A stretch of DNA of 64,000 nucleotides from Saccostrea cucullata (Eukaryota): NCBI RefSeq assembly GCF_032062105.1, contig NW_026939914.1, positions 1-64,000 on the forward strand, read 5' to 3'. The notes beneath the pieces were generated by a model, which worked only from the letters and a program-made list of their open reading frames with translations, was not told the origin of the DNA and made no database searches. This document shows positions 10,512 through 63,945 of the stretch, piece after piece; within the stretch, counting starts at the first letter, position 1, and every line of letters starts with the position of its first letter. A program made the position numbers and the translations under genes.

Positions 10512-10628
10512 TGTCATGTTGTAAATTTTGAATTTACCGGGTGGCAGTAAATACAAAATTTACAAGTTGTCATGTTGTAAATTTTGTATTTACTGCCACC
10601 CGGTAAATTCAAAATTTACAACATGACA
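10512..10628. mobile_element. Palindromic MITE, TGT...ACA ends, 4-bp TSD CAAA (Ginger-like)
   Basis: Near-perfect 117-bp hairpin with CAAA on both sides. A neighbouring repeat unit (~10679-10700) shows the empty site GCATGTAAATCTCGTGCG. Second copy at 63855-63945. Confidence 0.8.
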
Positions 10629-10827
10629 CAAATCTCGTGCGCAACTGCTCTGTGACTGACGCTAAGGAGGCCAAATATGCATGTAAATCTCGTGCGGCTG
10701 CCTTTGTGTTTGACGTTAGTGTGCGAGGACTATTGAAATTGGCATGGAAGTCCTCGAGTAATTTAAATCGATTAGTCTAAATTTTTAATGTCAAACTCTA
10801 CAATTTTATTTCACAATGAAATGGAAA

Positions 10828-37276: not shown

Positions 37277-39232
37277 GAATGGATTTATGGATTAAAGGTC
37301 AATAGGTCACTCTCTACCATCAGGTCATACATTCACTGTATGCATAAGGAAGGAACCAACAATTAATTTGTAAGGGATACTAAGTATTTCAAATGAGAGC
37401 TTTACATTTAAAAGGATATAGGTAAAAACTTCAGGTTTCCTTGAAACTGGAAACGGTGAAATTTCTCAAAACCGATTGAAAGGAATAACATTGGTTTTAC
37501 TTGAATTTTTAAAAGCCTGTTTTTAAGAAAGTCAGTCAATGATAATACTGATGGTTTGCACTTATTGAAATGTCTGAGTTTACAAAGCCATCCAATGTCT
37601 GCATTGTCAGACCATGCATCTGCTAAAACCTGCATTGATGAATTGTCCAATGCACACATTGAAAGACCGTGGTCCCGGCTAATTTCTACATTGTAATACA
37701 TGTCCTGTATTGAGATGCGTGAAAGCTGACCTGAGTCTTGCATTAACTAATTTTTTTTCCTCAAATTGACTGATTCACTGCATAGAGGAATGTTGAAAAG
37801 CAAAGCGTTTATTATCTGCATTTAGATGTTCACACTTATTAAACATTGTATCAATGCAGATCTGAATGTTGAACATTAAAAACAACTTGGATAAAATCAC
37901 CTTAAACTTGAAACGAAATACATGGAGATGACAAACAGTATTCAAACTCGAAAGTCCATTAAACAATACAATCAGGACCAGAGCAAATACGGACATCTAA
38001 AAACATGGAAAAAGGTGATATCAGGTACCACAACGGAGTGAGCATCCCCTGCGGATCGTTAACCCTTCCGTGTGCTCCTTTAATGATCTGTAAATAACGG
38101 GAAAGTCTGTCGACAATTTAGTGTATAAATAATGGCCAAATAATTAGCATTTCGCAAACTTTGTTTCTTAAAAAACATTCTGATTGTACGAACAAGTAAT
38201 CTGAAGCTGACATTGAAAAGATGTTTGAGTTTCTGATTGACAATATCTAAGTTGTTTTTGGAGACCAGGTCCTCCAACAATTTATTGGAATTCCCATGGG
38301 AATCAACTGCGCCCCTTATTAATATACTTATTTGTATTATGATGTGGAATTTGTCCAAAGTCTAATGCGTGAAAAGTAGAGTAAACCTGCTGTGGCCTTC
38401 AACTCGACGTTAAAGCTGAACACTACACGTAAAAAGGCATAGTCCGCCGTGTTTCCCGTTCATCAACGCTCTCCCTACAACCCCTATATAAGGAGAAGTA
38501 CAGTTACAGTTAAATGTATTTCGCTGTAGTGGTCAGACGAGTGTAGACGTACATCTTGCACTGCTGTGCTACTCGGTCGCGATGGAGTTATCAAATTTTA
38601 ATCATTTTATTCCAAAACAAGACAAAATATCATGAAAAATACAGGTCAATACATTATTCACAAACAGTAAATGCGCATAAAAACAGGGAATAAACGCAAA
38701 AAATTTAAGACCAAAAAATGGATACTACATGTCGGCCACGAGTTTCGAGTGTGCAATCGAGTGTAACAAAATCAAAGGGTTTCTATACACGTCTGACGGT
38801 GCCTATTTATTGATATTTAATGACATTAAATTATTATTTATACACAAATTGTCTTTTCTAGCCTTTGTGACTGAACTAAATTTGTTGCATTTTATTTTTT
38901 TATGTAATCAGGATGTGTTTCTATAAATAGTTTTTGTTTATGGGGTATTTTTTGGATTGACCAATAAGAAAAGAGTAGCCAGGGGCATTGATGCCTAGAG
39001 GGGGAGTCTGGCAATTGCAGTTGGAGCCTGGAAGTCACGGACTATTGTGCAGAAGCTATTATCTTCGATTTCCTCTACCATTCACAAAATGGATTACTTT
39101 TAAAACCTGTTATGCGTGTGTATTAGATGTTTTTATATGTTATAGGAACTTTTGACGTTTATATGTAGTGTTTCTGAGACGAATTCGACTGACTTTGTGT
39201 TTCATAATAATAACGTTACGTAACTTCGTAAG

Positions 39233-42200
39233 ATGGGACCTAAACGATCCACAAGACCTGCCCCGTATGATCCAGAACTCCCCGCAAACTGGCATGTTTC
39301 CCGATTGAAAGAGTTTTTGAATAATCGCGGAATAAACTTCCCACAGACCGCACGTAGATCAGTGTTGATACGTCTAGTGGAACAAGAGTATATTAATAGA
39401 ACAGAGACAAGTGCGCGATCCCAGAGTTCCGTGCAGCACAACAACAATGGCGGCGGTCGAGAACTAATAGACATTGTCACGAAGCTGACCTCTACGGTAC
39501 AGAACTTACAGCAGAATGTAATTAGTTTGACTTCCAGAGTTAACACCTTGACCTCGACGTCTCTATCTACTGATGTGAACTCGAGACCCAGCGAAATTAC
39601 AAATACACCGCTGCCAAATTCCACGATCACAACGCCGACGGTGAATCCAACTGTAAGTGTAACAACAGCTCTAGATCCTAGCAGCGGACAAAATGTGGCC
39701 ACTACAGAAATATCAAACAATTTCAACATTTCGTCAGCTATTACGGCCATGCAGACTTCAACACCACGCATTGTATCGGCGGCGGCCGGATCTGAAGCTC
39801 AACTGGGCAGGCCCGATTACACTAGGACTAGATATGGCTACGCGGCAGAATCTCTCCCCTTAGTGGAGACGATCTCTCCCCAACTAAGACAGCAGATAAC
39901 GGCAGGTAAGGATGTTAATCTTGCCGCCTTATTAATTCCCTATTATGCTCCTACTACAGAAGACAAAGCCACCGACAAAAAAACGGATTATAGGCTTTGT
40001 TAAAGTGAAATTTTGTGTGAAATTGTTTGTATAATTAATGCTTGATTTATATTATCTTAATCTTGTTGATTTGTAGTAATTGCTCTAAGCTGCAGACTGC
40101 AGTGATCTGTTTATGTGAAAAGGTCTTGACCGCTCATTAAGATTTGGCTGTGAAATTTAGCTCTTGTATCAGCATTGCTGACTTTTATCACCCGAGTCTC
40201 AGGGGGATTGAATGTCCGAAGTGCTGGCCATGAGAAAATGCAGAATTCATAGTGTTCACAATTAACGGGTTAATTTAGCAGTGATTGGCAGTCTGTAGGT
40301 TGGGCAGTTCTTAATATTTAGCGTAGAATTTGTGTGTTCAATTAGTTACTCAGTCGGGTCCTGTGTGTAAAGTGTTACACGGGAATACAAAATAAACTTT
40401 GTTGGAAACTTTGGGCATTTTTATTTAAAAAACAGAAAGTTTCTGTGTAACATTTTAAGTGGTGGCAGCGGTAAAGGATCCTAATTAAATGTGAAATATT
40501 GTTTGAAATTTTATATATATTTGGATTTAACAAGTGGAAATAAAATGCCTAGGAAACAGGACTTGAATTGGAATTACAACTTTCTAAACAAAACCAGGAA
40601 CATGAATTGCGTTTAAAAACACTTGAATTGGAACATGAAAAAGAAATTTTGGAATTACGTGTTCAGATAGAGAAGGCCAATTCAACACCAGGAGCACATT
40701 CGACAGGAATTCCAAAAATTAAACTTCAACCATTTAATCAGGAAAAGGATGACATTTTGTGCTATCTCTCTGAATTTGATGCGGTAGCTGAGCATGCAGG
40801 TTGGACTGAGAACTCAAAGGCTTTACAGCTTAGGTCACTTTTAACCGGAGAAGCTCGAGAAGTGTCGCAGCAAGTGACTTCGGGATACAGAGATCTGTAT
40901 AAGGCTCTTTTGAATCGATTCGGCAAGCGCCCAGCAGACTACTTTCAGTTCCTGGAGGAAATTAAACGTAGACCAGGAGAAACTTACAGAGGATTAATGT
41001 CGAGAATAGATCTGTATTTGAGTTGTTTCATTGATGAGAAAGATCCCGTACAAAAGTTCCGAGAAGAGTATTTCTTAAAGGCGTTATCTCCTCAACAAGC
41101 CCAGTGGATTAGACGGAATAAGGGAAGTAGTGAGTTAGTTGAAGCTGCTGAGGATTACATTCTACTAACAAAATCGGCTGAGGACAGAAAACTTCAAAAT
41201 CCTAAAGTGTTAGGTGAGAAGAAGAGCCAGGAACAGGGGAACTCCGGAAAACAGAAAAGTTTGGAAAAAGTGAAATGTTTTAGCTGTGGGAACTTTGGAC
41301 ATTATGCAAACAAATGCCCAAAGAAAGGTAATCTAGCGTCGTGTTTCGTGAAAGGAGCATTATGGGGTTTACATTATGTTCCGGGGAAAGTGGATGATGT
41401 GGAAGTGTCAATGGTCAAGGACACTGGAACATCTATGACGCTATTGCGGGAGGATCTTGTTGATCCAAAATGTGTTCTACATGGACAAACTACTTCCTTG
41501 GTTACAGCTATTGGACAGCCATTCGAGGCTAAGTTAGCAGTGGTTAACCTGGAAACACCAATGTTTAAGGGACATGTTCAGGTAGGTTTAGTACCTGATC
41601 TGGTTGCAGATGGTTTATTGGGAATAGATGTTCTGGAGAGGAACAAAGTCGCAGGTGTGGTTACGAGAGCCAAAGCAAAAGAACAAGAACAAAATGAAGT
41701 AAATGCCAAAAATCGCATGAATAAATGTGATGTCGAACCAAGGGACTTAAATGTCGTGGTAACTAAGGATGAGGCTGATGAAGTGAACCTTGATTTACCG
41801 GAAATTACATTACTGGCAGCAGCAGAAAATGAAATTGGAATTGAACAGCAATTTCCTAACGACACCACAGAAACAATTTCAGATCTTGTCTTTTGACATG
41901 GGCTGACACAAGTGCAGAGACAGAGTTTAAGGGATGTTTGTCAGAAATTTTCAAGAATTTTCACATCAAAGCCAGGAAAGTGTGATGTTATCTCACATAC
42001 AATCAGAACAACGTCTGAGAATCCAATTACTCAGAGACCTTACAGGATACCGGAAGCTAAGAAACAGGAAGTGAAGGAGTCTTTGAATGAAATATTAGAA
42101 CAAGGACTTATTACACCATCCAAAAGTCCGTGGGCCTCACCAATTGTCCTTGTCAACAAGCCTGATGGGACAATTAGAATATGTGTTGATTACAGAAAAT

Positions 42201-45200
42201 TGAATGAAATAACTCTCACGGATCCTTATCCCATTCCACGCATGAGTGAAATATTTGAGAAAATTGGAAGTGCAAAATATTTGAGTAGATTTGATCTTAC
42301 AAAAGGCTACTGGCAAGTTCCTCTGGCAAAGGAAACACGTGAGAAATCCGCCTTCATCACCCCATTTGGCCTTTTCGAGTTTACAGTGATGCCGTTTGGT
42401 ATGAAGACGTCTCCAGCATCATTCATAAGACTTATGGATCGTATTTTAGATGGAACTCAAAATACTGTTGCGTACTTTGATGACATAATTGTCTACAGTC
42501 AGACGTGGGAAGACCATATCAAACATGTAACAGAGCTACTTCAGCGTATTCATGAGGCCAATCTTACCATCAGACCATCAAAATGTAAGTTGGGAGCAAC
42601 AGAAATCATGTGTTTGGGACATATAGTTGGAGGGGGATCAATTCGACCAGACCCTCGGAAATTGAAGGCCATGGAGGATTTTCCGCTTCCCTTGACAAAG
42701 AAAGAATTAAGATCATTCTTGGGGCTAACTGGATACTATCGCCAGTATTTAGGAAATTATGCGGACATAACTGTACCACTGACTGATCTACTGAGAAAAA
42801 GTCAACCCGCAGAATTAAAATGGACGGAGAGGGAAGTGCAGTCATTCAAGAAACTGAAGGAGGCCCTGATGACAGCTCCTGTTTTGGTCAATCCGAACTT
42901 CAATTTACCGTTTGTACTACAAACAGATGCGAGTAATAACGCAATTGGGGCTGTCCTGAGCCAACAGTTGCCAGATGGTGATCACCCAGTTGCTTACCTT
43001 AGTAAGTAGTAAGAAGTTACTTCCGAGGGAAAAGAATTATTCAACGATAGAGAAGGAATTATTGGCTATCGTTTGGGCCATTGGATCGTTCTCGTATTAC
43101 CTAGAACGGAGGAAGTTTTACGTAGAAACAGATCACAATCCACTAACATGGTTGCAGAATGATAATAAAGAATAAAAATCAGAGACTTTTACGTTGGGCC
43201 CTCGCACTACAATCGTACACCTTTGAAGTTAGATATAAGAGAGGAAGCAAAAACACAAATGCAGACGAATTATCAAGAATCTGAAAAGTGAAATGTGTTT
43301 GTGAATTATGGGCAATTTTTGTGAAAATTTTATATTCATAAAATTCAAGTGCATTCAGTTTGGATTTACAGTGAAATTCATTTTGGATTTATATTATTCT
43401 TTTGATGATTAATTGCTATTAACTGTTTAATACTTATTTAGTGACTGGCTAAAGTGAATTTAGTGACTGGTTAAATTTAATGTTGCTATATAAAGAATTA
43501 TGAACTTGGAAAAAATTCAACTATTGACAGTTAAATTTTTATCTTTGGAAGGGAGGTGTTAAAGTGAAATTTTGTGTGAAATTGTTTGTATAATTAATGC
43601 TTGATTTATATTATCTTAATCTTGTTGATTTGTAGTAATTGCTCTAAGCTGCAGACTGCAGTGATCTGTCTATGTGAAAAGGTCTTGACCGCTCATTAAG
43701 ATTTGGCTGGGAAATTTAGCTCTTGTATCAGCATTGCTGACTTTTATCACCCGAGTCTCAGGGGGATTGAATGTCCGAAGTGCTGGCCATGAGAAAATGC
43801 AGAATTCATAGTGTTCACAATTAACGGGTTAATTTAGCAGTGATTGGCAGTCTGTAGGTTGGGCAGTTCTTAATATTTAGCGTAGAATTTGTGTGTTCAA
43901 TTAGTTACTCAGTCGGGTCCTGTGTGTAAAGTGTTACACGGGAATACAAAATAAACTTTGTTGGAAACTTTGGGCGTTTTTATTTAAAAACAGAAAGTTT
44001 CGGTGTAACATTTTAAGTGGTGGCAGCGGTAAAGGATCCTAATTAAATGTGAAATATTGTTTGAAATTTTATATATATTTGGATTTAACAAGTGGAAATA
44101 AAATGCCTAGGAAACAGGACTTGGAATTGGAATTACAACTTTCTAAACAAAAACAGGAACATGAATTGCGTTTAAAAACACTTGAATTGGAACATGAAAA
44201 AGAAATTTTGGAATTACGTGTTCAGATAGAGAAGGCCAATTCAACACCAGGAGCACATTCGACAGGAATTCCAAAAATTAAACTTCAACCATTTAATCAG
44301 GAAAAGGATGACATTTTGTGCTATCTCTCTGAATTTGATGCGGTAGCTGAGCATGCAGGTTGGACTGAGAACTCAAAGGCTTTACAGCTTAGGTCACTTT
44401 TAACCGGAGAAGCTCGAGAAGTGTCGCAGCAAGTGACTTCGGGATACAGAGATCTGTATAAGGCTCTTTTGAATCGATTCGGCAAGCGCCCAGCAGACTA
44501 CTTTCAGTTCCTGGAGGAAATTAAACGTAGACCAGGAGAAACTTACAGAGGATTAATGTCGAGAATAGATCTGTATTTGAGTTGTTTCATTGATGAGAAA
44601 GATCCCGTACAAAAGTTCCGAGAAGAGTATTTCTTAAAGGCGTTATCTCCTCAACAAGCCCAGTGGATTAGACGGAATAAGGGAAGTAGTGAGTTAGTTG
44701 AAGCTGCTGAGGATTACATTCTACTAACAAAATCGGCCGAGGACAGAAAACTTCAAAATCCTAAAGTGTTAGGTGAGAAGAAGAGCCAGGAACAGGGGAA
44801 CTCCGGAAAACAGAAAAGTTTGGAAAAAGTGAAATGTTTTAGCTGTGGGAACTTTGGACATTATGCAAACAAATGCCCAAAGAAAGGTAATCTAGCGTCG
44901 TGTTTCGTGAAAGGAGCATTATGGGGTTTACATTATGTTCCGGGGAAAGTGGATGATGTGGAAGTGTCAATGGTCAAGGACACTGGAACATCTATGACGC
45001 TATTGCGGGAGGATCTTGTTGATCCAAAATGTGTTCTACATGGACAAACTACTTCCTTGGTTACAGCTATTGGACAGCCATTCGAGGCTAAGTTAGCAGT
45101 GGTTAACCTGGAAACACCAATGTTTAAGGGACATGTTCAGGTAGGTTTAGTACCTGATCTGGTTGCAGATGGTTTATTGGGAATAGATGTTCTGGAGAGG

Positions 45201-48200
45201 AACAAAGTCGCAGGTGTGGTTACGAGAGCCAAAGCAAAAGAACAAGAACAAAATGAAGTAAATGCCAAAAATCGCATGAATAAATGTGATGTCGAACCAA
45301 GGGACTTAAATGTCGTGGTAACTAAGGATGAGGCTGATGAAGTGAACCTTGATTTACCGGAAATTACATTACTGGCAGCAGCAGAAAATGAAATTGGAAT
45401 TGAACAGCAATTTCCTAACGACACCACAGAAACAATTTCAGATCTTGTCTTTTGACATGGGCTGACACAAGTGCAGAGACAGAGTTTAAGGGATGTTTGT
45501 CAGAAATTTTCAAGAATTTTCACATCAAAGCCAGGAAAGTGTGATGTTATCTCACATACAATCAGAACAACGTCTGAGAATCCAATTACTCAGAGACCTT
45601 ACAGGATACCGGAAGCTAAGAAACAGGAAGTGAAGGAGTCTTTGAATGAAATATTAGAACAAGGACTTATTACACCATCCAAAAGTCTGTGGGCCTCACC
45701 AATTGTCCTTGTCAACAAGCCTGATGGGACAATTAGAATATGTGTTGATTACAGAAAATTGAATGAAATAACTCTCACGGATCCTTATCCCATTCCACGC
45801 ATGAGTGAAATATTTGAGAAAATTGGAAGTGCAAAATATTTGAGTAGATTTGATCTTACAAAAGGCTACTGGCAAGTTCCTCTGGCAAAGGAAACACGTG
45901 AGAAATCCGCCTTCATCACCCCATTTGGCCTTTTCGAGTTTACAGTGATGCCGTTTGGTATGAAGACGTCTCCAGCATCATTCATAAGACTTATGGATCG
46001 TATTTTAGATGGAACTCAAAATACTGTTGCGTACTTTGATGACATAATTGTCTACAGTCAGACGTGGGAAGACCATATCAAACATGTAACAGAGCTACTT
46101 CAGCGTATTCATGAGGCCAATCTTACCATCAGACCATCAAAATGTAAGTTGGGAGCAACAGAAATCATGTGTTTGGGACATATAGTTGGAGGGGGATCAA
46201 TTCGACCAGACCCTCGGAAATTGAAGGCCATGGAGGATTTTCCGCTTCCCTTGACAAAGAAAGAATTAAGATCATTCTTGGGGCTAACTGGATACTATCG
46301 CCAGTATTTAGGAAATTATGCGGACATAACTGTACCACTGACTGATCTACTGAGAAAAAGTCAACCCGCAGAATTAAAATGGACGGAGAGGGAAGTGCAG
46401 TCATTCAAGAAACTGAAGGAGGCCCTGATGACAGCTCCTGTTTTGGTCAATCCGAACTTCAATTTACCGTTTGTACTACAAACAGATGCGAGTAATAACG
46501 CAATTGGGGCTGTCCTGAGCCAACAGTTGCCAGATGGTGATCACCCAGTTGCTTACCTTAGTAAGTAGTAAGAAGTTACTTCCGAGGGAAAAGAATTATT
46601 CAACGATAGAGAAGGAATTATTGGCTATCGTTTGGGCCATTGGATCGTTCTCGTATTACCTAGAACGGAGGAAGTTTTACGTAGAAACAGATCACAATCC
46701 ACTAACATGGTTGCAGAATGATAATAAAGAATAAAAATCAGAGACTTTTACGTTGGGCCCTCGCACTACAATCGTACACCTTTGAAGTTAGATATAAGAG
46801 AGGAAGCAAAAACACAAATGCAGACGAATTATCAAGAATCTGAAAAGTGAAATGTGTTTGTGAATTATGGGCAATTTTTGTGAAAATTTTATATTCATAA
46901 AATTCAAGTGCATTCAGTTTGGATTTACAGTGAAATTCATTTTGGATTTATATTATTCTTTTGATGATTAATTGCTATTAACTGTTTAATACTTATTTAG
47001 TGACTGGCTAAAGTGAATTTAGTGACTGGTTAAATTTAATGTTGCTATATAAAGAATTATGAACTTGGAAAAAATTCAACTATTGACAGTTAAATTTTTA
47101 TCTTTGGAAGGGAGGTGTTAAAGTGAAATTTTGTGTGAAATTGTTTGTATAATTAATGCTTGATTTATATTATCTTAATCTTGTTGATTTGTAGTAATTG
47201 CTCTAAGCTGCAGACTGCAGTGATCTGTCTATGTGAAAAGGTCTTGACCGCTCATTAAGATTTGGCTGTGAAATTTAGCTCTTGTATCAGCATTGCTGAC
47301 TTTTATCACCCGAGTCTCAGGGGGATTGAATGTCCGAAGTGCTGGCCATGAGAAAATGCAGAATTCATAGTGTTCACAATTAACGGGTTAATTTAGCAGT
47401 GATTGGCAGTCTGTAGGTTGGGCAGTTCTTAATATTTAGCGTAGAATTTGTGTGTTCAATTAGTTACTCAGTCGGGTCCTGTGTGTAAAGTGTTACACGG
47501 GAATACAAAATAAACTTTGTTGGAAACTTTGGGCGTTTTTATTTAAAAACAGAAAGTTTCGGTGTAACATTTTAAGTGGTGGCAGCGGTAAAGGATCCTA
47601 ATTAAATGTGAAATATTGTTTGAAATTTTATATATATTTGGATTTAACAAGTGGAAATAAAATGCCTAGGAAACAGGACTTGGAATTGGAATTACAACTT
47701 TCTAAACAAAAACAGGAACATGAATTGCGTTTAAAAACACTTGAATTGGAACATGAAAAAGAAATTTTGGAATTACGTGTTCAGATAGAGAAGGCCAATT
47801 CAACACCAGGAGCACATTCGACAGGAATTCCAAAAATTAAACTTCAACCATTTAATCAGGAAAAGGATGACATTTTGTGCTATCTCTCTGAATTTGATGC
47901 GGTAGCTGAGCATGCAGGTTGGACTGAGAACTCAAAGGCTTTACAGCTTAGGTCACTTTTAACCGGAGAAGCTCGAGAAGTGTCGCAGCAAGTGACTTCG
48001 GGATACAGAGATCTGTATAAGGCTCTTTTGAATCGATTCGGCAAGCGCCCAGCAGACTACTTTCAGTTCCTGGAGGAAATTAAACGTAGACCAGGAGAAA
48101 CTTACAGAGGATTAATGTCGAGAATAGATCTGTATTTGAGTTGTTTCATTGATGAGAAAGATCCCGTACAAAAGTTCCGAGAAGAGTATTTCTTAAAGGC

Positions 48201-51200
48201 GTTATCTCCTCAACAAGCCCAGTGGATTAGACGGAATAAGGGAAGTAGTGAGTTAGTTGAAGCTGCTGAGGATTACATTCTACTAACAAAATCGGCCGAG
48301 GACAGAAAACTTCAAAATCCTAAAGTGTTAGGTGAGAAGAAGAGCCAGGAACAGGGGAACTCCGGAAAACAGAAAAGTTTGGAAAAAGTGAAATGTTTTA
48401 GCTGTGGGAACTTTGGACATTATGCAAACAAATGCCCAAAGAAAGGTAATCTAGCGTCGTGTTTCGTGAAAGGAGCATTATGGGGTTTACATTATGTTCC
48501 GGGGAAAGTGGATGATGTGGAAGTGTCAATGGTCAAGGACACTGGAACATCTATGACGCTATTGCGGGAGGATCTTGTTGATCCAAAATGTGTTCTACAT
48601 GGACAAACTACTTCCTTGGTTACAGCTATTGGACAGCCATTCGAGGCTAAGTTAGCAGTGGTTAACCTGGAAACACCAATGTTTAAGGGACATGTTCAGG
48701 TAGGTTTAGTACCTGATCTGGTTGCAGATGGTTTATTGGGAATAGATGTTCTGGAGAGGAACAAAGTCGCAGGTGTGGTTACGAGAGCCAAAGCAAAAGA
48801 ACAAGAACAAAATGAAGTAAATGCCAAAAATCGCATGAATAAATGTGATGTCGAACCAAGGGACTTAAATGTCGTGGTAACTAAGGATGAGGCTGATGAA
48901 GTGAACCTTGATTTACCGGAAATTACATTACTGGCAGCAGCAGAAAATGAAATTGGAATTGAACAGCAATTTCCTAACGACACCACAGAAACAATTTCAG
49001 ATCTTGTCTTTTGACATGGGCTGACACAAGTGCAGAGACAGAGTTTAAGGGATGTTTGTCAGAAATTTTCAAGAATTTTCACATCAAAGCCAGGAAAGTG
49101 TGATGTTATCTCACATACAATCAGAACAACGTCTGAGAATCCAATTACTCAGAGACCTTACAGGATACCGGAAGCTAAGAAACAGGAAGTGAAGGAGTCT
49201 TTGAATGAAATATTAGAACAAGGACTTATTACACCATCCAAAAGTCCGTGGGCCTCACCAATTGTCCTTGTCAACAAGCCTGATGGGACAATTAGAATAT
49301 GTGTTGATTACAGAAAATTGAATGAAATAACTCTCACGGATCCTTATCCCATTCCACGCATGAGTGAAATATTTGAGAAAATTGGAAGTGCAAAATATTT
49401 GAGTAGATTTGATCTTACAAAAGGCTACTGGCAAGTTCCTCTGGCAAAGGAAACACGTGAGAAATCCGCCTTCATCACCCCATTTGGCCTTTTCGAGTTT
49501 ACAGTGATGCCGTTTGGTATGAAGACGTCTCCAGCATCATTCATAAGACTTATGGATATTTTAGATGGAACTCAAAATACTGTTGCGTACTTTGATGACA
49601 TAATTGTCTACAGTCAGACGTGGGAAGACCATATCAAACATGTAACAGAGCTACTTCAGCGTATTCATGAGGCCAATCTTACCATCAGACCATCAAAATG
49701 TAAGTTGGGAGCAACAGAAATCATGTGTTTGGGACATATAGTTGGAGGGGGATCAATTCGACCAGACCCTCGGAAATTGAAGGCCATGGAGGATTTTCCG
49801 CTTCCCTTGACAAAGAAAGAATTAAGATCATTCTTGGGGCTAACTGGATACTATCGCCAGTATTTAGGAAATTATGCGGACATAACTGTACCACTGACTG
49901 ATCTACTGAGAAAAAGTCAACCCGCAGAATTAAAATGGACGGAGAGGGAAGTGCAGTCATTCAAGAAACTGAAGGAGGCCCTGATGACAGCTCCTGTTTT
50001 GGTCAATCCGAACTTCAATTTACCGTTTGTACTACAAACAGATGCGAGTAATAACGCAATTGGGGCTGTCCTGAGCCAACAGTTGCCAGATGGTGATCAC
50101 CCAGTTGCTTACCTTAGTAAGTAGTAAGAAGTTACTTCCGAGGGAAAAGAATTATTCAACGATAGAGAAGGAATTATTGGCTATCGTTTGGGCCATTGGA
50201 TCGTTCTCGTATTACCTAGAACGGAGGAAGTTTTACGTAGAAACAGATCACAATCCACTAACATGGTTGCAGAATGATAATAAAGAATAAAAATCAGAGA
50301 CTTTTACGTTGGGCCCTCGCACTACAATCGTACACCTTTGAAGTTAGATATAAGAGAAGAAGCAAAAACACAAATGCAGACGAATTATCAAGAATCTGAA
50401 AAGTGAAATGTGTTTGTGAATTATGGGCAATTTTTGTGAAAATTTTATATTCATAAAATTCAAGTGCATTCAGTTTGGATTTACAGTGAAATTCATTTTG
50501 GATTTATATTATTCTTTTGATGATTAATTGCTATTAACTGTTTAATACTTATTTAGTGACTGGCTAAAGTGAATTTAGTGACTGGTTAAATTTAATGTTG
50601 CTATATAAAGAATTATGAACTTGGAAAAAATTCAACTATTGACAGTTAAATTTTTATCTTTGGAAGGGAGGTGTTAAAGTGAAATTTTGTGTGAAATTGT
50701 TTGTATAATTAATGCTTGATTTATATTATCTTAATCTTGTTGATAACGGCAGGTAAGGATGTTAATCTTGCCGCCTTATTAATTCCCTATTATGCTCCTA
50801 CTACAGAAGACAAAGCCACCGACAAAAAAACGGATTATAGGCTTTGTTAAAGTGAAATTTTGTGTGAAATTGTTTGTATAATTAATGCTTGATTTATATT
50901 ATCTTAATCTTGTTGATTTGTAGTAATTGCTCTAAGCTGCAGACTGCAGTGATCTGTTTATGTGAAAAGGTCTTGACCGCTCATTAAGATTTGGCTGTGA
51001 AATTTAGCTCTTGTATCAGCATTGCTGACTTTTATCACCCGAGTCTCAGGGGGATTGAATGTCCGAAGTGCTGGCCATGAGAAAATGCAGAATTCATAGT
51101 GTTCACAATTAACGGGTTAATTTAGCAGTGATTGGCAGTCTGTAGGTTGGGCAGTTCTTAATATTTAGCGTAGAATTTGTGTGTTCAATTAGTTACTCAG

Positions 51201-54200
51201 TCGGGTCCTGTGTGTAAAGTGTTACACGGGAATACAAAATAAACTTTGTTGGAAACTTTGGGCGTTTTTATTTAAAAACAGAAAGTTTCGGTGTAACATT
51301 TTAAGTGGTGGCAGCGGTAAAGGATCCTAATTAAATGTGAAATATTGTTTGAAATTTTATATATATTTGGATTTAACAAGTGGAAATAAAATGCCTAGGA
51401 AACAGGACTTGGAATTGGAATTACAACTTTCTAAACAAAAACAGGAACATGAATTGCGTTTAAAAACACTTGAATTGGAACATGAAAAAGAAATTTTGGA
51501 ATTACGTGTTCAGATAGAGAAGGCCAATTCAACACCAGGAGCACATTCGACAGGAATTCCAAAAATTAAACTTCAACCATTTAATCAGGAAAAGGATGAC
51601 ATTTTGTGCTATCTCTCTGAATTTGATGCGGTAGCTGAGCATGCAGGTTGGACTGAGAACTCAAAGGCTTTACAGCTTAGGTCACTTTTAACCGGAGAAG
51701 CTCGAGAAGTGTCGCAGCAAGTGACTTCGGGATACAGAGATCTGTATAAGGCTCTTTTGAATCGATTCGGCAAGCGCCCAGCAGACTACTTTCAGTTCCT
51801 GGAGGAAATTAAACGTAGACCAGGAGAAACTTACAGAGGATTAATGTCGAGAATAGATCTGTATTTGAGTTGTTTCATTGATGAGAAAGATCCCGTACAA
51901 AAGTTCCGAGAAGAGTATTTCTTAAAGGCGTTATCTCCTCAACAAGCCCAGTGGATTAGACGGAATAAGGGAAGTAGTGAGTTAGTTGAAGCTGCTGAGG
52001 ATTACATTCTACTAACAAAATCGGCTGAGGACAGAAAACTTCAAAATCCTAAAGTGTTAGGTGAGAAGAAGAGCCAGGAACAGGGGAACTCCGGAAAACA
52101 GAAAAGTTTGGAAAAAGTGAAATGTTTTAGCTGTGGGAACTTTGGACATTATGCAAACAAATGCCCAAAGAAAGGTAATCTAGCGTCGTGTTTCGTGAAA
52201 GGAGCATTATGGGGTTTACATTATGTTCCGGGGAAAGTGGATGATGTGGAAGTGTCAATGGTCAAGGACACTGGAACATCTATGACGCTATTGCGGGAGG
52301 ATCTTGTTGATCCAAAATGTGTTCTACATGGACAAACTACTTCCTTGGTTACAGCTATTGGACAGCCATTCGAGGCTAAGTTAGCAGTGGTTAACCTGGA
52401 AACACCAATGTTTAAGGGACATGTTCAGGTAGGTTTAGTACCTGATCTGGTTGCAGATGGTTTATTGGGAATAGATGTTCTGGAGAGGAACAAAGTCGCA
52501 GGTGTGGTTACGAGAGCCAAAGCAAAAGAACAAGAACAAAATGAAGTAAATGCCAAAAATCGCATGAATAAATGTGATGTCGAACCAAGGGACTTAAATG
52601 TCGTGGTAACTAAGGATGAGGCTGATGAAGTGAACCTTGATTTACCGGAAATTACATTACTGGCAGCAGCAGAAAATGAAATTGGAATTGAACAGCAATT
52701 TCCTAACGACACCACAGAAACAATTTCAGATCTTGTCTTTTGACATGGGCTGACACAAGTGCAGAGACAGAGTTTAAGGGATGTTTGTCAGAAATTTTCA
52801 AGAATTTTCACATCAAAGCCAGGAAAGTGTGATGTTATCTCACATACAATCAGAACAACGTCTGAGAATCCAATTACTCAGAGACCTTACAGGATACCGG
52901 AAGCTAAGAAACAGGAAGTGAAGGAGTCTTTGAATGAAATATTAGAACAAGGACTTATTACACCATCCAAAAGTCCGTGGGCCTCACCAATTGTCCTTGT
53001 CAACAAGCCTGATGGGACAATTAGAATATGTGTTGATTACAGAAAATTGAATGAAATAACTCTCACGGATCCTTATCCCATTCCACGCATGAGAAATATT
53101 TGAGAAAATTGGAAGTGCAAAATATTTGAGTAGATTTGATCTTACAAAAGGCTACTGGCAAGTTCCTCTGGCAAAGGAAACACGTGAGAAATCCGCCTTC
53201 ATCACCCCATTTGGCCTTTTCGAGTTTACAGTGATGCCGTTTGGTATGAAGACGTCTCCAGCATCATTCATAAGACTTATGGATATTTTAGATGGAACTC
53301 AAAATACTGTTGCGTACTTTGATGACATAATTGTCTACAGTCAGACGTGGGAAGACCATATCAAACATGTAACAGAGCTACTTCAGCGTATTCATGAGGC
53401 CAATCTTACCATCAGACCATCAAAATGTAAGTTGGGAGCAACAGAAATCATGTGTTTGGGACATATAGTTGGAGGGGGATCAATTCGACCAGACCCTCGG
53501 AAATTGAAGGCCATGGAGGATTTTCCGCTTCCCTTGACAAAGAAAGAATTAAGATCATTCTTGGGGCTAACTGGATACTATCGCCAGTATTTAGGAAATT
53601 ATGCGGACATAACTGTACCACTGACTGATCTACTGAGAAAAAGTCAACCCGCAGAATTAAAATGGACGGAGAGGGAAGTGCAGTCATTCAAGAAACTGAA
53701 GGAGGCCCTGATGACAGCTCCTGTTTTGGTCAATCCGAACTTCAATTTACCGTTTGTACTACAAACAGATGCGAGTAATAACGCAATTGGGGCTGTCCTG
53801 AGCCAACAGTTGCCAGATGGTGATCACCCAGTTGCTTACCTTAGTAAGTAGTAAGAAGTTACTTCCGAGGGAAAAGAATTATTCAACGATAGAGAAGGAA
53901 TTATTGGCTATCGTTTGGGCCATTGGATCGTTCTCGTATTACCTAGAACGGAGGAAGTTTTACGTAGAAACAGATCACAATCCACTAACATGGTTGCAGA
54001 ATGATAATAAAGAATAAAAATCAGAGACTTTTACGTTGGGCCCTCGCACTACAATCGTACACCTTTGAAGTTAGATATAAGAGAGGAAGCAAAAACACAA
54101 ATGCAGACGAATTATCAAGAATCTGAAAAGTGAAATGTGTTTGTGAATTATGGGCAATTTTTGTGAAAATTTTATATTCATAAAATTCAAGTGCATTCAG

Positions 54201-55430
54201 TTTGGATTTACAGTGAAATTCATTTTGGATTTATATTATTCTTTTGATGATTAATTGCTATTAACTGTTTAATACTTATTTAGTGACTGGCTAAAGTGAA
54301 TTTAGTGACTGGTTAAATTTAATGTTGCTATATAAAGAATTATGAACTTGGAAAAAATTCAACTATTGACAGTTAAATTTTTATCTTTGGAAGGGAGGTG
54401 TTAAAGTGAAATTTTGTGTGAAATTGTTTGTATAATTAATGCTTGATTTATATTATCTTAATCTTGTTGATTTGTAGTAATTGCTCTAAGCTGCAGACTG
54501 CAGTGATCTGTTTATGTGAAAAGGTCTTGACCGCTCATTAAGATTTGGCTGTGAAATTTAGCTCTTGTATCAGCATTGCTGACTTTTATCACCCGAGTCT
54601 CAGGGGGATTGAATGTCCGAAGTGCTGGCCATGAGAAAATGCAGAATTCATAGTGTTCACAATTAACGGGTTAATTTAGCAGTGATGGGCAGTCTGTAGG
54701 TTGGGCAGTTCTTAATATTTAGCGTAGAATTTGTGTGTTCAATTAGTTACTCAGTCGGGTCCTGTGTGTAAAGTGTTACACGGGAATACAAAATAAACTT
54801 TGTTGGAAACTTTGGGCGTTTTTATTTAAAAACAGAAAGTTTCGGTGTAACAGGCTTCAAAGAGTCTTGACACTGGGGGAGTTTATACAGGCGTTCGGAA
54901 TCTACAAAAACATAATGTGTAATTCATACCCACAAAGGAGAACGGAATTGGATCTATACGAGCGAGACATAGTGGAAATGGCCACAGGTTACCCAGGTAA
55001 AGGGTTTTACGAATATCACAGACAGTTTAGCTTAATTGCGGCTTCACATTTGAAGTTCAACAACATACTGGTGGACTGGTCAGTTCGCAACAATACGTTG
55101 TTCTGCAACATTTTCGCTAATGCCAAAGCACAAACTTGTTCTTGGTGCAACAGCACTCTGCATTTGTCTGGATTTTGCCCTCTGTCTAAGACATCTGTAG
55201 ACAGAAAACAAAGGGATAGAGACATAGATTCATATGGAAGGAAACGTCATTTCAGTGCAGGAAGAGAGATTTGTAACAACTTTAATGGGGCAAAAGGATG
55301 TGCACTTGCTCGTTGTAGGAATGCTCATATTTGTATTGATTGTAAGGGAGATCACTCTAGATTGAAATGCGACAGTTCAAAAAACTCTCAATGGCCCCAA
55401 ACTGGGGCCTCGAATCAACAGAAACTGTGA
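39233..55430 (+). CDS. Gag-like ORF1 of the YR retroelement, split by the Gypsy array (39233-39997 joined to 54858-55430)
   Basis: Removing the insertion restores the frame DYRL-QRVLTLGEFIQAF. N-terminal HeH/LEM-like segment (WHVSRLKEFLNNRGI..RRSVLIRL). C-terminal CSWC-x4-H-x4-C, CCCH-like and CIDC-x3-H-x4-C fingers. Confidence 0.85.
40460..40472 (+). promoter_or_regulatory. Primer-binding site, tRNA-Leu type (repeated after each 5' LTR)
   Basis: TGGTGGCAGCGGT, 7 nt after the LTR end. Confidence 0.8.
40545..43284 (+). pseudogene. Gypsy unit 1 gag-protease-RT-RNase H
   Basis: CFSCGNFGHYANKC knuckle, KDTG protease, YFDD RT and TDAS RNase H. Extra 1-nt deletion near the start (~40564), TGA at 41894 and frameshifts at ~43005 and ~43165. 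Confidence 0.93.
43547..43556 (+). promoter_or_regulatory. Polypurine tract (repeated in each unit)
   Basis: GGAAGGGAGG immediately before the LTR TG. Confidence 0.85.
44103..46843 (+). pseudogene. Gypsy unit 2 gag-protease-RT-RNase H
   Basis: Same domains and shared lesions as unit 1; SPW changed to SLW. Confidence 0.93.
47662..50399 (+). pseudogene. Gypsy unit 3 gag-protease-RT-RNase H
   Basis: Same domains and lesions; 3-bp deletion LMDRIL to LMDIL. Confidence 0.93.
50742..50844 (+). repeat. Duplicate of the left insertion flank (39895-39997) inside the Gypsy array
   Basis: GATAACGGCAGGTAAGG...GATTATAGGCTT is identical to the DIRS gag flank and is joined to a truncated LTR at a GAT microhomology. 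Confidence 0.95.
51391..54126 (+). pseudogene. Gypsy unit 4 gag-protease-RT-RNase H
   Basis: Shares the 3-bp deletion with unit 3, plus a 2-bp RT frameshift at ~53093. Confidence 0.93.
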
Positions 55431-57043
55431 TTAGCAATCTCAATTCGGAGATCACCACACCTGTAAATATTGATGTACTACAAAACATGTTGTTTGATCA
55501 TCCAAATAAAACTTTCACAGACTATTTACTACATGGTTTGAAGCAGGGTTTCCACACAGGTATACAGATCATTCCAGATAAATCATTTGAATGCAAGAAT
55601 TTAAGATCTGCAACGTTACAACCAGACGTGGTTACTGAGCTAATTCAAGTGGAGGTAAGCAAAGGATATCTTTATGGACCCTTTGACCAAATTCCCTTCT
55701 CTCAGTATCGCATTAACCCCATTGGAGTGGCTGAAAGCAAGTATTCCAAAAAGAAACGCCTTATTGTAGACATGTCAGCACCTCATAATGATGAAATGCA
55801 TCCTAGTTTGAATGAGCTGATAGACAAAGAAGAATTCTCGTTAAGCTATGTTACCCTTGACGATGCTATTCGGCTCATAAAAAATTTGTGGAAAGGAGCT
55901 CTACTGATAAAAACTGACATTACAGATGCATTCAAAATAATGCCCATATGTCACAAACTTTGGCCGTATCATGGTGTGAAATGGAACAAGAAGTACTATT
56001 TCTTCAAACGCTTAGTATTTGGTAGTCGTTCTAGCCCAAAGATTTTCGACCATTTATCTTCAGCAGTTTGCTGGATTGCGGAAAATAAGTACAATATTTC
56101 CAATATTTTGCATCTTTTGGATGATTTTCTGGTCATCGTGCCTCAGAACAACAATGCGAGTGAAATAATGCAAAGATTCCTGGACATTTTCAACAAACTA
56201 GGCATACCTCTATCTGCAAAGAAAACTGAAGGACCTTGCACAGAGCTAGAATACTTGGGAATCTTTTTAGACACTGTACGTATGGAAGCAAGATTACCGA
56301 GAGAAAAGATTAAAAGAATCTCTGAAATAGTAGAATCTTTTCTTCATCGCAAAGCATGCACGAAAAGGGAACTACTCAGTCTCCTGGGACATCTGAATTT
56401 TGCATGCCGGGTTATCCTTCCAGGCCGTTCTTTCATTTCACATTTGATATCAGTGTCTACCTCCGTCAAAATGCTGCATCACCATGTTCATCTTACCAGC
56501 ATGTGTAGAGCTGATCTCACCATGTGGGCGAAGTTCTTACGTTCTTGGAATGGTGTATCCTTTTTCATCAATGACAACATAACTGAAGCTGCAGATATGC
56601 AGCTGTATACAGATGCAACACTTGTTTCATTTGGCGGATTCTATCAAAACAAATGGTTCCAAGGACACTTCGCACCTGAAATTCTGGAAGAGCAAACTTC
56701 AATGGCCTTCTTTGAACTATATCCGATTGTTATGGCTTGTCTTCTGTGGGGGCATAATTGGCAAAGGAAAAGAATTTTATTTCACTGTGACAATAGGGCA
56801 ACGGTAGACATAATTCATAAAGGGCGATCCAAAGTTAATAGCATCATGAAATTAATGAGGACATTGACTTTTCATGCAGCAAGTAATCATTATGTCATTC
56901 ATGCAAAACATATTGAGGGCATAAAAAACTCAATAGCGGACTCTATTTCTCGTTATCAGATGGAGAGATTTCGATGCCTGGCCCCACACTCCGATCCAGA
57001 GCCCATTCCTTGCCTGCATCATTCCGAGATGTTGATGGATTAG
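55367..57043 (+). CDS. DIRS/Ngaro-type reverse transcriptase-RNase H
   Basis: RINPIG, KRLIVDMS, KTDITDAF, LVFGSRSSP, HLLDDF, LEYLGI, LYTDA, ELYPI, HCDN and ADSISR. No methyltransferase domain follows. Confidence 0.95.
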   Translation: MRQFKKLSMAPNWGLESTETVISNLNSEITTPVNIDVLQNMLFDHPNKTFTDYLLHGLKQGFHTGIQIIPDKSFECKNLRSATLQPDVVTELIQVEVSKGYLYGPFDQIPFSQYRINPIGVAESKYSKKKRLIVDMSAPHNDEMHPSLNELIDKEEFSLSYVTLDDAIRLIKNLWKGALLIKTDITDAFKIMPICHKLWPYHGVKWNKKYYFFKRLVFGSRSSPKIFDHLSSAVCWIAENKYNISNILHLLDDFLVIVPQNNNASEIMQRFLDIFNKLGIPLSAKKTEGPCTELEYLGIFLDTVRMEARLPREKIKRISEIVESFLHRKACTKRELLSLLGHLNFACRVILPGRSFISHLISVSTSVKMLHHHVHLTSMCRADLTMWAKFLRSWNGVSFFINDNITEAADMQLYTDATLVSFGGFYQNKWFQGHFAPEILEEQTSMAFFELYPIVMACLLWGHNWQRKRILFHCDNRATVDIIHKGRSKVNSIMKLMRTLTFHAASNHYVIHAKHIEGIKNSIADSISRYQMERFRCLAPHSDPEPIPCLHHSEMLMD

Positions 57044-58012
57044 AGCAAGCAGTACAGGATTTATGGGACAAGTCCTTAAGCCACTCTACCAAGCAGACGT
57101 ACAGTTCCGCTTTTCAGACTTTTATAACATTCATGCAAATGAATGGAGTAACATTTTTAAATGATGGCTTACCACCTGTAAATGAGACTGTTCTTGTTTA
57201 TTTTGTAACACATTGTAAATCAGTGTTGAAACTCAAGCATGACACTATTAAATTGTACTTAGCTGGAATTCGTTTCCACTATATAAGAGCAGGTTACGGA
57301 GATATTTTGCAGGGTTGTGACCAATTACAATATGTTTTACGAGGAATTAAAAGATCTCAAATGAATGTACATAATAAACGCTTACCTATTACTGTTGACA
57401 TTTTACAACAGCTTTTGCATGTGTTAGATAAAGGTTTTTTTTTTCCCTTTTGTAGATCTCATGTTGAAGTGTATGTTTTCTTGTGCCTATTTTGGTTTTC
57501 TCAGATGTGGGGAAATCACTTGTAAAAGTACCAACTCCTTAGAATTTGTACAGATTGGTGATGTTGTTATGCAATCCGACAAAAATGCCTTTGTTTTGAG
57601 ACTAAAATCTTCTAAGACAGATCCTTTCTCCAGAGGTGTAGATATTACAATTTATGAGAACGAACATTTGAAACCTGTACATATTATGATGTCATATTTA
57701 GAAATTCGCAAGTCTCTACCATTTTTGTTATCTTCACCTCTTTTTGTAGACAGTGAATTCAATTTAGCACCAATTTTAAGAGAAAAATTTGTACAACTTT
57801 TAAGACAACTGCTCCTACGACTAGGTTATCCTGTAAATAATTTTGCTGGTCATTCTTTCCGTATAGGAGCAGCCACTGCAGCAGCTGCTGCTGGTGTTGA
57901 AGATCATGTGATTAAAGAACTAGGTAGATGGTCTTCAAATTGTTATATCAGGTATATAAGAACTAATTCGCAAGTCATAAGGGAAGCTCAAGAAAAAATG
58001 AGTGGTAGATAA
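56974..58012 (+). CDS. Tyrosine recombinase of the YR retroelement (frameshift in T10 at 57435-57444, possibly a sequencing error)
   Basis: Core-binding N-terminus plus catalytic R (FLRCGE), K (SKTD), HSFR, GRW and Y (CYIRY). Confidence 0.92.
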
Positions 58013-58085: not shown

Positions 58086-58799
58086 CTCTTGGGGGCTTCA
58101 CTCATTACTTCGTTCATTTGGCGTTCATTCCCGGGGAATTTTGCCCCCAATATTACTTATATTTAAATTTTGTGTGTCTGAAGTGGATTTGTTCTGTTTA
58201 AATACTTCGAATGTATAGTGTAGTACATGTATATAAGAATGGTTATATTTTATGCATCAAAACAATGGGATTAGCCCATAGTTTGTACTCGAAGGTATTT
58301 GTCTGGTTATGTAGCCTGCTGGGATCAGCCCCAGGCGTGATGCACTCCTGGGATCAGCCCGGAGTGTGGGTTCTACTTTAGCCTTTAGGGATCAGCCCAA
58401 GGCTAGGTATCTTGTTTACATCCTCTCGGGATCAGACCAGAGGTCCGTCAGGTTTTCGTGGCCTGCTGGGATCAGCCCCAGGCATATCACTCCTGGGATC
58501 AGCCCGGAGTGGCGATTTGTGCTTGCCTCTAGGGATCAGCCCTAGGCGTGTTTCCTGTTGAGCATCCTCTTGGGATCAGCCCAGAGGATTGTCTTGTTAG
58601 TAGCCTGCCGGGATCAGCCCCAGGCATTGTGCACTCCTGGGATCAGCCCGGAGTTGTTTTTGGTGCTTGCCTTTAGGGATCAGCTCTAGGCAGAATTGGG
58701 TCTAATTGTTTCGAGATCAGGTTGGATTTATTTATTGATCGCAGTTAAGAGTTGGAAGGAAAGGTAGAGAAAGTAATGAGTAGCCCCCAGAGCGCCAAA
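58086..58799 (+). ncRNA. Structured non-coding region: 12 GGGAT(C/T)AGCCC hairpins with variable, self-complementary lower stems, enclosed by a long-range stem
   Basis: Cores at 58267, 58321, 58350, 58388, 58428, 58468, 58495, 58532, 58572, 58610, 58639 and 58676. Closing helix 58086-58110 / 58771-58792. Confidence 0.75.
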
Positions 58800-58949
58800 C
58801 AAGTATGAGTTTTGAGATTTACAATATTGTAAATATTTTTTCTATGTGTTCATGTTTTTTATGGATTTTTGATATGTTAAATATTAAACCAACTGAACCT
58901 CTTAAACCTTGTTTTGTTTTGTGTATAAATGAGAAGTGTTCAGCTTTAA

Positions 58950-61710: not shown

Positions 61711-63102
61711 TCATCGATTGACACATGATTTTAAATAAGTGACTTTGTCTTTAATAAATTCCCTAAATCCAGGAATCCGCACGACGTACACCAGCGGGTT
61801 TAACACTGAATGAAGAGTAGAGATACAAAACAATACGGTACGAACGATATCATCCCCACTGCCCTCCATCAAAAATCCTTCCGCGAACAGAAAGAAGTAG
61901 AATGGTCCATTCAGCGATAGATGTAGCAAAATAATTATGGAGACAGTTATCAACGATTTTTTATGACGAAGCGTAATGGGGTTTTTCTGCAGTTGCTTAT
62001 TCATATTACTGTCGGATGATTCAGGTTTTTGGGATTCTGTATCATGTGAACACACGGGGGAGGATTTCAATGTTCTGTGTTCTTCGAATCCTTTTGGTTG
62101 TACAGAATCCAAGGTAAAAACGAGCGTTTTTGGCGAGGAATTAAAGTATGGCGTGTTTTTTACGGAGGATAAATTTTCTGAAATATTTTCCGTTTCTTTG
62201 TTTATGTGCAACTTTCCATTGGATATTTCTTCAGTTTTGATACTCCTACGCACTGGATCATTGAGAATTTGAATGGAAGTTGATAAGATATTAGATTTAC
62301 GCAAATTTTGTTCATGTTGTTCTTGACTCTTTGCCCCATTTTCATCTTTTGGTATGGTCATTTCACGGACGGTAACAAGACTGCTGTTGGAGACATCATC
62401 ATTTTGAACTGTGTTTTTTGTCTGTATTTGGTCACTTGCATATTCGATATTGATAGGAAATATTCGCCTCAACCAAGTCTGCCGTGTATATAGTTTACAT
62501 CCGACTATAAGATTCATAGTTATCAACAGGAGACCACTAATCACTAATGTCATGCTGTGTAATTTTAAGAACAATTTATGTTTATCACCAAAGACACTCT
62601 CTAAAGTACATAAAATGAATGGTACGTTTTTCTGCGTCATCGTTAAAAAAGTCAAACCGGTTGAAAATAAAGCTAGAAACCATGTAATGAAAATAACTAG
62701 AATGGCGTTTCTAAGTTCAAATTTGAATACTGTGAAATTATTTTTTCCTATTGCATAGCATCTCAAAAAACCAATTATCAGCACGTGAAAACTTGAAGCT
62801 TGTATGCAGGTTGTATACCCCGCCAGTGCTATGGTACAGGAGTTATAGCTCACAGAATAAGTATTTGCCATATAAGAAATCAAGGGACGAATGGAAACAC
62901 CAACAAGAAAGTCAGTGAAGGAAAGACTAATAGTGGTTAAGTTATATCCACTCTTTCGCAAATGTTTGCTGAATAATGCAACTAGGAACACAAAGGCATT
63001 GAAAAATATTGCCATACAAACGACAAGACCAGTGATAACTTTTCCCGCTAAAGTATGATCTAAATCCGTAAACGACGGCTTAGATCCATTAGAGCTGTTC
63101 AT
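61711..63102 (-). CDS. Class A (rhodopsin-like) GPCR, uninterrupted coding region, 463 aa
   Basis: Seven hydrophobic segments; FN in TM1, LSFTD in TM2, LRC at the DRY position, W in TM4, Cys in ECL2, GPF in TM6, NPLVY in TM7. Long ICL3 and N-terminal NSS/NGS sequons. Probable 5' UTR splice acceptor at ~63138. Confidence 0.92.
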   Translation of the reverse strand: MNSSNGSKPSFTDLDHTLAGKVITGLVVCMAIFFNAFVFLVALFSKHLRKSGYNLTTISLSFTDFLVGVSIRPLISYMANTYSVSYNSCTIALAGYTTCIQASSFHVLIIGFLRCYAIGKNNFTVFKFELRNAILVIFITWFLALFSTGLTFLTMTQKNVPFILCTLESVFGDKHKLFLKLHSMTLVISGLLLITMNLIVGCKLYTRQTWLRRIFPINIEYASDQIQTKNTVQNDDVSNSSLVTVREMTIPKDENGAKSQEQHEQNLRKSNILSTSIQILNDPVRRSIKTEEISNGKLHINKETENISENLSSVKNTPYFNSSPKTLVFTLDSVQPKGFEEHRTLKSSPVCSHDTESQKPESSDSNMNKQLQKNPITLRHKKSLITVSIIILLHLSLNGPFYFFLFAEGFLMEGSGDDIVRTVLFCISTLHSVLNPLVYVVRIPGFREFIKDKVTYLKSCVNR

Positions 63103-63854: not shown

Positions 63855-63945
63855 TGTCATGTTGTAAATTTTGAATTTACCGGGTGGTAGAAAATACACA
63901 ACTTACAACCTGACAACCGGTGAATTCAAAATTTACAACATGACA
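63855..63945. mobile_element. Second copy of the Ginger-like palindromic MITE
   Basis: TGTCATGTTGTAAATTTTGAATT...AATTCAAAATTTACAACATGACA, with flanks GTTT/CTTT. Confidence 0.75.

Follow-up and report, generated by a model that had tools for sequence, protein, structure and literature searches.

The closest described relatives of the element analysed here are Ngaro-like tyrosine-recombinase (YR) retrotransposons, such as DIRS-53_XT of Xenopus and the Ngaro element of Cafeteria, with which it shares split direct repeats in the order A1-ORFs-B1-A2-B2 and a gene content of gag, reverse transcriptase/RNase H (RT/RH) and YR, without a methyltransferase (PMC9210276, PMC4157794, PMC8547959). Neither RNA structure nor boundary motifs are mentioned in these Ngaro accounts (PMC9210276, PMC4157794, PMC8547959). 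The B repeat of DIRS-53_XT is 152 bp long, whereas that of the oyster element spans 812 bp and contains a hairpin array within a covarying scaffold; unlike the compared Ngaro-like elements, the oyster element is also devoid of an SGNH hydrolase ORF. A second likeness exists to DIRS-1, in which the internal complementary region (ICR) and a proposed 3' priming hairpin provide a non-coding cis element that follows the ORFs and is needed for rebuilding the ends (PMC7192593). However, the DIRS-1 ICR pairs with inverted-repeat termini, while the pairing in the oyster element takes place within and just before a direct repeat and is accompanied by a multi-copy array. The primer of reverse transcription in the DIRS order is unknown (PMC7192593).

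The oyster element as such is an ordinary Ngaro-type retrotransposon. Bulged stem-loops in terminal regions that are read by a protein of the element itself are represented by retroviral psi and hepadnavirus epsilon. Psi is located at the 5' end and consists of a small number of dissimilar hairpins whose loops are G-rich, and epsilon is a single stem-loop, present twice in the RNA and read by the polymerase, which couples packaging to reverse transcription. The oyster module differs from both by its 3-12 equivalent hairpins and by its location in the 3' repeat. TOC1 and kangaroo, which are split-direct-repeat YR elements, reportedly carry internal tandem arrays near their left end that were described as sequence repeats, whereas the oyster array is located in B and is composed of covarying hairpins. 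In the literature searched, which had the classic Ngaro, TOC1 and kangaroo papers beyond its scope, we found no description of the RNA module or of the boundary motifs reported below, and likewise none of how the split repeats of Ngaro elements acquire sharply defined ends or by which means RNA is selected by these elements.

The window, i.e. the entire stretch of 64,000 nucleotides from Saccostrea cucullata, contains one copy of the element, which is assigned to the Ngaro type by layout, gene order and domain content, the recombinase tree being one without named Ngaro references. The features of this copy and of the insertion within it are all encoded on the plus strand, with the genes for Gag, RT/RH and YR followed by the downstream repeats. 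Sibling copies (L002, L005, L006, L007 and L011) end in B1-A2-B2, and their A2 and B repeats match positions 38809-39058 and 58119-58930 of the window, which define its A1 (250 bp, 97-99% identical to the sibling A2 between B1 and B2) and its B1 (812 bp), respectively. The first nucleotides of A1 form the right half of the inverted repeat at the recombinase site; A1 contains CCAAT at 38961-38965 and ends where CCCACCC begins in A2. The gag gene is divided into an N-terminal part with a weak HeH/LEM-like match (39233-39997) and a C-terminal part (54853-55430) comprising a helical domain, a CCHC knuckle, a CCCH finger and a second CCHC-like finger. Between these parts, an unrelated gypsy LTR element of four tandem gag-protease-RT-RNase H units (39998-54852) is inserted and flanked by the 5-bp duplication GGCTT. 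The four units, each with LTR, gag, protease, RT and RNase H, are more than 99% identical and no integrase ORF was seen in them; about 100 nt of Ngaro gag are held in one gypsy junction (50742-50844). The Gag fingers are weakly similar to the RNA-binding fingers of MBNL (E 8e-4) and LIN28, and structural comparison of the helical domain revealed no match to a capsid-like fold. A 558 amino acid long RT/RNase H ORF (55367-57043) runs into the YR, which is present as two ORFs in this copy (56974-58012, namely 56974-57525 and 57461-58012). Pfam detected only RVT_1 (E 1.6e-13) in the 558 amino acid ORF, and the methyltransferase that separates Ngaro from PAT and DIRS1 was not found.

At its right end, the element contains the left half (58918-58930) of the inverted repeat at the B|A junction, the presumed recombinase site. 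Upstream of it lies ATTAAA (58883-58888), a likely poly(A) signal, which in eight families is separated from the recombinase half-site by 32-38 nt. Integration occurred without target duplication: the two ends share an AT core only, and the flanks can be rejoined to a small host element. This host element (38410-38808 and 58931-58949) is Kolobok-like and flanked by TTAA, and the short inverted ends seen at this place belong to it and not to Ngaro. Besides the interrupted gag and the recombinase in two pieces, the window copy is characterized by missing A2-B2 repeats. Three loci (L015, L018 and L028) are solo A-spacer-B remnants without ORFs that were probably generated by recombination between A1 and A2, and the window copy is probably their B1 x B2 counterpart. 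One sibling copy encodes a recombinase identical to a protein of Saccostrea cucullata, with relatives in Ostrea, Mytilus, scallops and a unionid. A search of viral contigs gave no relative.

A first-pass annotation of the window had described an array of twelve bulged hairpins directly after the RT and recombinase genes. Twelve cores of the GGGATCAGCCC type are indeed present at 58267-58686, all on the plus strand, compared with 0.18 expected by chance when matches to GGGATCAGCCC with at most one change are counted, and twelve cores were reached in none of 100 shuffles. The hairpins cover 58256-58694 on the plus strand, and the array starts about 250 nt beyond the recombinase stop, in agreement with its described position. 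It had been overlooked that the array sits inside the terminal B split direct repeat, and complete copies thus carry it twice. The described periodicity was also recovered: after a first unit 54 nt upstream, the cores recur every 27-40 nt (spacings 54, 29, 38, 40, 40, 27, 37, 40, 38, 29 and 37), and the stem types A-B-C-D recur at about 145 nt (TRF: period 144, 2.7 copies, 80% matches). Local folding predicts a three-pair upper stem with an AUCAG loop in each unit, one loop reading AUUAG. A pyrimidine bulge of 1-2 nt (CU, U, CC or UU) is found on the 5' side in most units; the first unit has its bulge on the 3' side, and the fifth lacks one closing pair. The MS2 operator, to which these hairpins had been compared, is defined by one bulged A, a 2-bp upper stem and an ANYA tetraloop. 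A short stem, a 5' bulge and a loop starting with AUCA are shared, but the resemblance is superficial, because the array units have no bulged A; their bulge consists of 1-2 pyrimidines and is separated by an upper stem of 3 bp from a loop of five nucleotides.

The array alone is no more stable than its own shuffles (z -1.2), and folding of the whole region yields a modest z-score of -3.3. The A-type units often pair with one another instead in the global ensemble, and their own hairpins reach probabilities of only 0.03-0.47. Due to the low z-score of the array and the inter-unit pairing of the A-type units, the case for structure is one of covariation and not of energy. Among 54 distinct units, the lower stems are paired at 4.72 of 5 positions on average versus 3.74 with shuffled partners (maximum 4.13 in 5000), and a 2-nt bulge is located on the 5' side in 42. 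On the plus strand, these units contain 12 G-U wobbles compared to 3 A-C combinations, which favors selection on the sense strand. When differences shared between the older subfamilies of the window's family are counted, they amount to 0/60 in loops, 7/223 in stems and 12/135 in linkers (Fisher p 0.005). The earlier proposal that structure is under selection, as opposed to satellite drift, is thus borne out by covariation within and across families and by the excess of G-U over A-C; from these sequence comparisons, we consider selection on RNA structure as highly probable.

Comparable arrays are not restricted to the window's family. The enclosing helix described below is kept in 19 elements, and most of these contain arrays of their own with loops that differ by family. 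In a typical unit of these relatives, an N-U-C-N(N) loop sits on three pairs, which a 2-nt bulge on the 5' side separates from the stem below. The same loop as in the window is present in a sister family with approx. 67% recombinase identity, where a 44-nt tandem unit was independently amplified, and in Ostrea edulis, where it is placed on other stems. In more distant families of the same genome and of other bivalves, the loops CUCC, AUCUA, AUCC, GUCA (closed by GGU/ACC), AUCA (closed by GAG/CUC), AUCG and AUC within GGCC/GGCC were observed. N-U-C loops, with U-C at positions 2-3, account for 77 of 181 hairpins versus 24/301 in shuffles, a count in which repeats within a family are non-independent; about seven separate loop and closing-pair types nevertheless have U-C in common. 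The loop type tracks the recombinase clades, and at least five loop types are found in one genome. This concordance is not equivalent to co-evolution, because related elements share loops and Gag alike. In every array-bearing family checked, the ligands of the Gag fingers are either invariant or retained; most oyster families are covered as 3.5-kb loci without gag, and the pairing of Gag with arrays is confined to the remaining families. Other repeats that deviate from this pattern are present in L064, L067, L068 and L070, and the most distant relatives examined have no array. After the recombinase gene of L063 and L094, the loops can be read as the hexaloops GAUCUA, GCUCUA and GUUCUA, the last of which equals the Roquin ADE consensus GUUYUA.

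The array is enclosed by a long-range helix. As proposed in the first-pass annotation, 58086-58110, a strand just outside the B repeat that contains a G-run and a CTCA segment, pairs with 58771-58792, and the predicted duplex has an energy of -33.6 kcal/mol with core pair probabilities of 0.9-1.0. In the 19 elements, which have 40-97% recombinase identity and originate from oysters, mussels, a scallop, a unionid and others, this helix spans 303-715 nt and covaries, as do the hairpin stems between units. With the strands anchored by motif alone, cognate strands reach a mean of -28.7 kcal/mol compared to -22.5 kcal/mol for non-cognate strands (0/50000 permutations, a value inflated by the relatedness of the elements), and the own 3' partner of the G-run strand outscores every other segment after the recombinase gene. 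These statistics come only from the motif-anchored test; a table of best-fit partners misplaces some pseudoknot strands. In the upper helix, both sides have changed in the same columns, giving A-U, G-C, C-G and U-A pairs. The suggested pseudoknot between TTTGGCG (58117-58123) and CGCCAAA (58793-58799) is conserved, but its covariation is weak (p 0.03). Its complementarity extends to 10 bp (58117-58126 with 58790-58799), such that 58771-58799 provides the 3' strand for both the helix and the pseudoknot. The two strands are nearly invariant, the 5' strand is lost in several B2 copies, and the sequence comparison makes the pseudoknot likely.

The G-run has a second, local partner, a conserved C-run (58143-58150) that is located 6-47 nt after the pseudoknot strand. 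The local pairing covaries on its own (p 2e-4), and in L094, for example, GAGG pairs with CCUC. Because the long-range and the local pairing of the G-run exclude each other, a switch is suggested. Upstream of B2, a different strand is usually found, which still pairs with the same 3' strand; the upstream strand is bulged in B1 and often near-perfect in B2. The scaffold also includes a conserved unpaired U-C-G-U segment. Distant relatives keep a similar, compact fold without an array, and the arrays therefore look like insertions into an older structure. At the gathering score, the covariance models of Rfam 15 did not match the window or 14 related loci.

The ends of the split repeats coincide with these motifs: B starts at the pseudoknot strand, in the window at 58119, and A ends at CCCACCC. 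The start of B, i.e. the position at which B1/B2 identity begins, falls between -2 and +7 nt relative to the pseudoknot-strand GG in 12/12 elements and within -2 to +4 nt in 10 of the 12. GG is found at the start of B also in most of the distant elements, and G is the first nucleotide in nearly all. Relative to the end of A, where A1/A2 identity stops, CCCACC begins at -2 to +4 nt in 21 of 23 elements; these include oyster elements as well as distant ones of metagenome hosts, with recombinase identities down to 35%. The A1/A2 and B1/B2 pairs are mostly 97-100% identical. CCCACCC was observed at the A2 end of L002 (1207-1224, minus strand) and of 20 other loci, both bivalve and distant Ngaro-like; it is a candidate primer site, antisense polypurine tract or KLF/Sp site, the same sequence also being a KLF/Sp DNA site. 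A search within the element for a G-rich primer candidate for CCCACCC found none. G-rich stretches that are able to pair with CCCACCC occur in B of L067, L068 and L076 and are absent from the window's family. The TGG with which B begins was rejected as a tRNA primer site, because families differ in the sequence that follows it and TGG is often missing from B2. The G-run, which resembles a tRNA-Pro site, was also dismissed as a primer site, as it covaries instead with a strand of the element itself. The B|A junction is a conserved inverted repeat preceded by the poly(A) hexamer, which is located 4-200 nt past the helix and is not covered by it. In bivalve elements, A contains a CCAAT box 83-104 nt before its end.

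Transcription was assessed by RNA-seq mapping. In three oligo-dT runs of a related organism, a sibling copy was covered by 25-86 reads per run; the depth is highest over B and fades just beyond the ATTAAA hexamer, and the junction between spacer and B2 is present in RNA. The element is transcribed at a low level, which is all that these reads show, but the depth is only 1-15x and the strand signal is not uniform: two runs are sense-biased if the libraries were stranded as usual, and one run contains both strands. Poly(A) addition at GCCAAA was rejected, because reads run past this site, and no joint removing the array by splicing was present in the reads at this low depth. The idea that the array is a source of small RNAs found no support.

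We tentatively read the module as a structured cis-acting RNA in the Ngaro B repeat that would combine a Gag docking array with a strand-transfer scaffold, a combined reading to which we assign somewhat less than an even chance. On the sense RNA, the array would offer multiple docking sites to a protein encoded by the element. A multivalent protein site is indicated because geometry and loop are fixed, while stems and linkers are free and the copy number is variable, and an element-encoded reader is favored because at least five loop types coexist in one host. The most likely reader would be the CCHC-CCCH-CCHC finger cluster of Gag, which may select the RNA of its own family for particle assembly; packaging by Gag is the best guess because the fingers are kept in array-bearing families and are similar to RNA-binding fingers. 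Two arrays would be present on full-length RNA from A1 to B2, and a single one on transcripts that terminate at the poly(A) site of B1. The enclosing helix, the pseudoknot and the alternative local helix would mark the 5' end of B for the reverse transcriptase. We infer that cDNA synthesis could start from a G-rich primer on CCCACCC directly after A2 and that RT could copy A2 and B1, halt at the scaffold and jump to the start of B2, from where it would proceed through the spacer, A2, B1 and the ORFs as far as the 5' end. The ends would then be joined through A, and the resulting circle would be integrated by the recombinase. In such a retrovirus-like cycle, A2 would be the template for a new A1 and B1 for a new B2, both with the observed ends. 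Docking of Gag is countered by distant relatives that have CCCH fingers and the compact fold without an array, and the lack of a capsid-like structural match for the helical domain also speaks against Gag. The combined reading is further weakened by the low covariation of the pseudoknot and the loss of its 5' strand in several B2 copies, by the missing primer candidate and the KLF/Sp alternative for CCCACCC, by the unremarkable stability of the array alone, and by the low RNA depth with both strands in one run. In a further version, which is possible but doubtful, Ngaro elements would have two unrecognised replication signals, namely CCCACCC as a primer site that is present near-universally where A2 ends, and a scaffold with switchable pairing that stops and transfers RT where B starts; in a bivalve-rich clade, this scaffold would have acquired lineage-specific hairpin arrays as identity tags for the Gag of each family.

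Several other explanations were considered. Docking of a host RNA-binding protein for export, localisation or stabilisation, with a scaffold that merely closes the domain, would agree with the 3' UTR position of the array and with the U-C loops and the bulged shape that are common to most families, and the bulged stem-loops of the I factor retrotransposon, which are read by Egalitarian, are transport signals (10.1101/2025.08.03.668247). Yet Egalitarian does not contact the loop (10.1101/2025.08.03.668247), and the loops studied here are near invariant within a family and vary between families of one host; as a host protein would also leave the boundary coincidence unexplained, we regard its involvement as unlikely. 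If RT/RNase H or the recombinase instead read the module, as RNA or as single-stranded sense cDNA, for loading or end-pairing and without Gag, this would suit its place in a terminal repeat, at a distance of about 130 nt to the presumed recombinase site, the single-stranded nature of DIRS-1 cDNA (PMC7192593) and the fact that G-T wobbles are also possible in DNA. This appears quite improbable, because a conserved inverted repeat at the B|A junction already provides the recombinase with a site, 3-12 copies fit a polymerising protein better than an enzyme, and the first cDNA would be the minus strand, in which the wobbles become A-C mismatches.

We also give little credence to a scaffold that acts as a two-state 3'-end switch between read-through of the B1 poly(A) site and use of B2, or that is part of a short non-coding RNA driven from A2. 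The hexamer is the same in B1 and B2 while the upstream strands are different, both mutually exclusive partners of the G-run covary, the CCAAT box in A could serve such an RNA, and read depth peaks over B; however, the hexamer lies beyond the helix and is uncovered, and two copies together with 3' bias would raise the depth over B anyway. Ribozymes are often carried by retrotransposons, and a self-cleaving ribozyme of an undescribed kind, whose cut would set the boundary at the start of B, would explain why nearly all elements begin B with G and why a pseudoknot accompanies the conserved unpaired U-C-G-U segment. It is nevertheless very improbable, considering the missing Rfam match and the RNA contigs and reads that cross the boundary without a pile-up of ends, although at low depth. 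An HDV-like ribozyme in particular, which is defined by a nested double pseudoknot with P1.1, a catalytic C and a short P3-L3 ahead of the 3' strand of P1, was rejected upon inspection, because its helix order does not fit: 650 nt occupy the place where P3-L3 belongs and no GG follows the helix, and Rfam again gave no match. Finally, a functionless minisatellite that arose by slippage from a palindromic seed is hardly credible. The tandem units with their TRF period of 144 and 2.7 copies, the 44-nt tandem unit of the sister family and the z-score of -1.2 for the array alone would be typical of it, but the stems change on both sides while the loops stay, the linkers are more variable than stems and loops (p 0.005), which makes divergence position-dependent, and the same geometry was rebuilt in separate lineages.

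If the version with a CCCACCC primer site, a switchable scaffold and family-specific identity tags is correct, the rebuilding of split direct repeats would be accounted for, and many natural, possibly orthogonal hairpin-protein pairs would be available. In case the fingers read the loops of their own family, these pairs would constitute a natural animal series of the MS2 type. The combined reading of Gag docking and strand transfer predicts a minus-strand cDNA of about 1.06 kb that extends from CCCACCC to the pseudoknot strand, as well as family-specific binding of Gag to the loops. The boundary motifs are also useful for annotating the ends of Ngaro elements.

Elsewhere in the window, a single-exon ORF on the minus strand (61711-63102) encodes a 463 amino acid long GPCR of the rhodopsin family (Pfam 7tm_1). 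Two short inverted-repeat elements with related arms, at 10512-10631 and 63855-63945, are probably MITE fragments.
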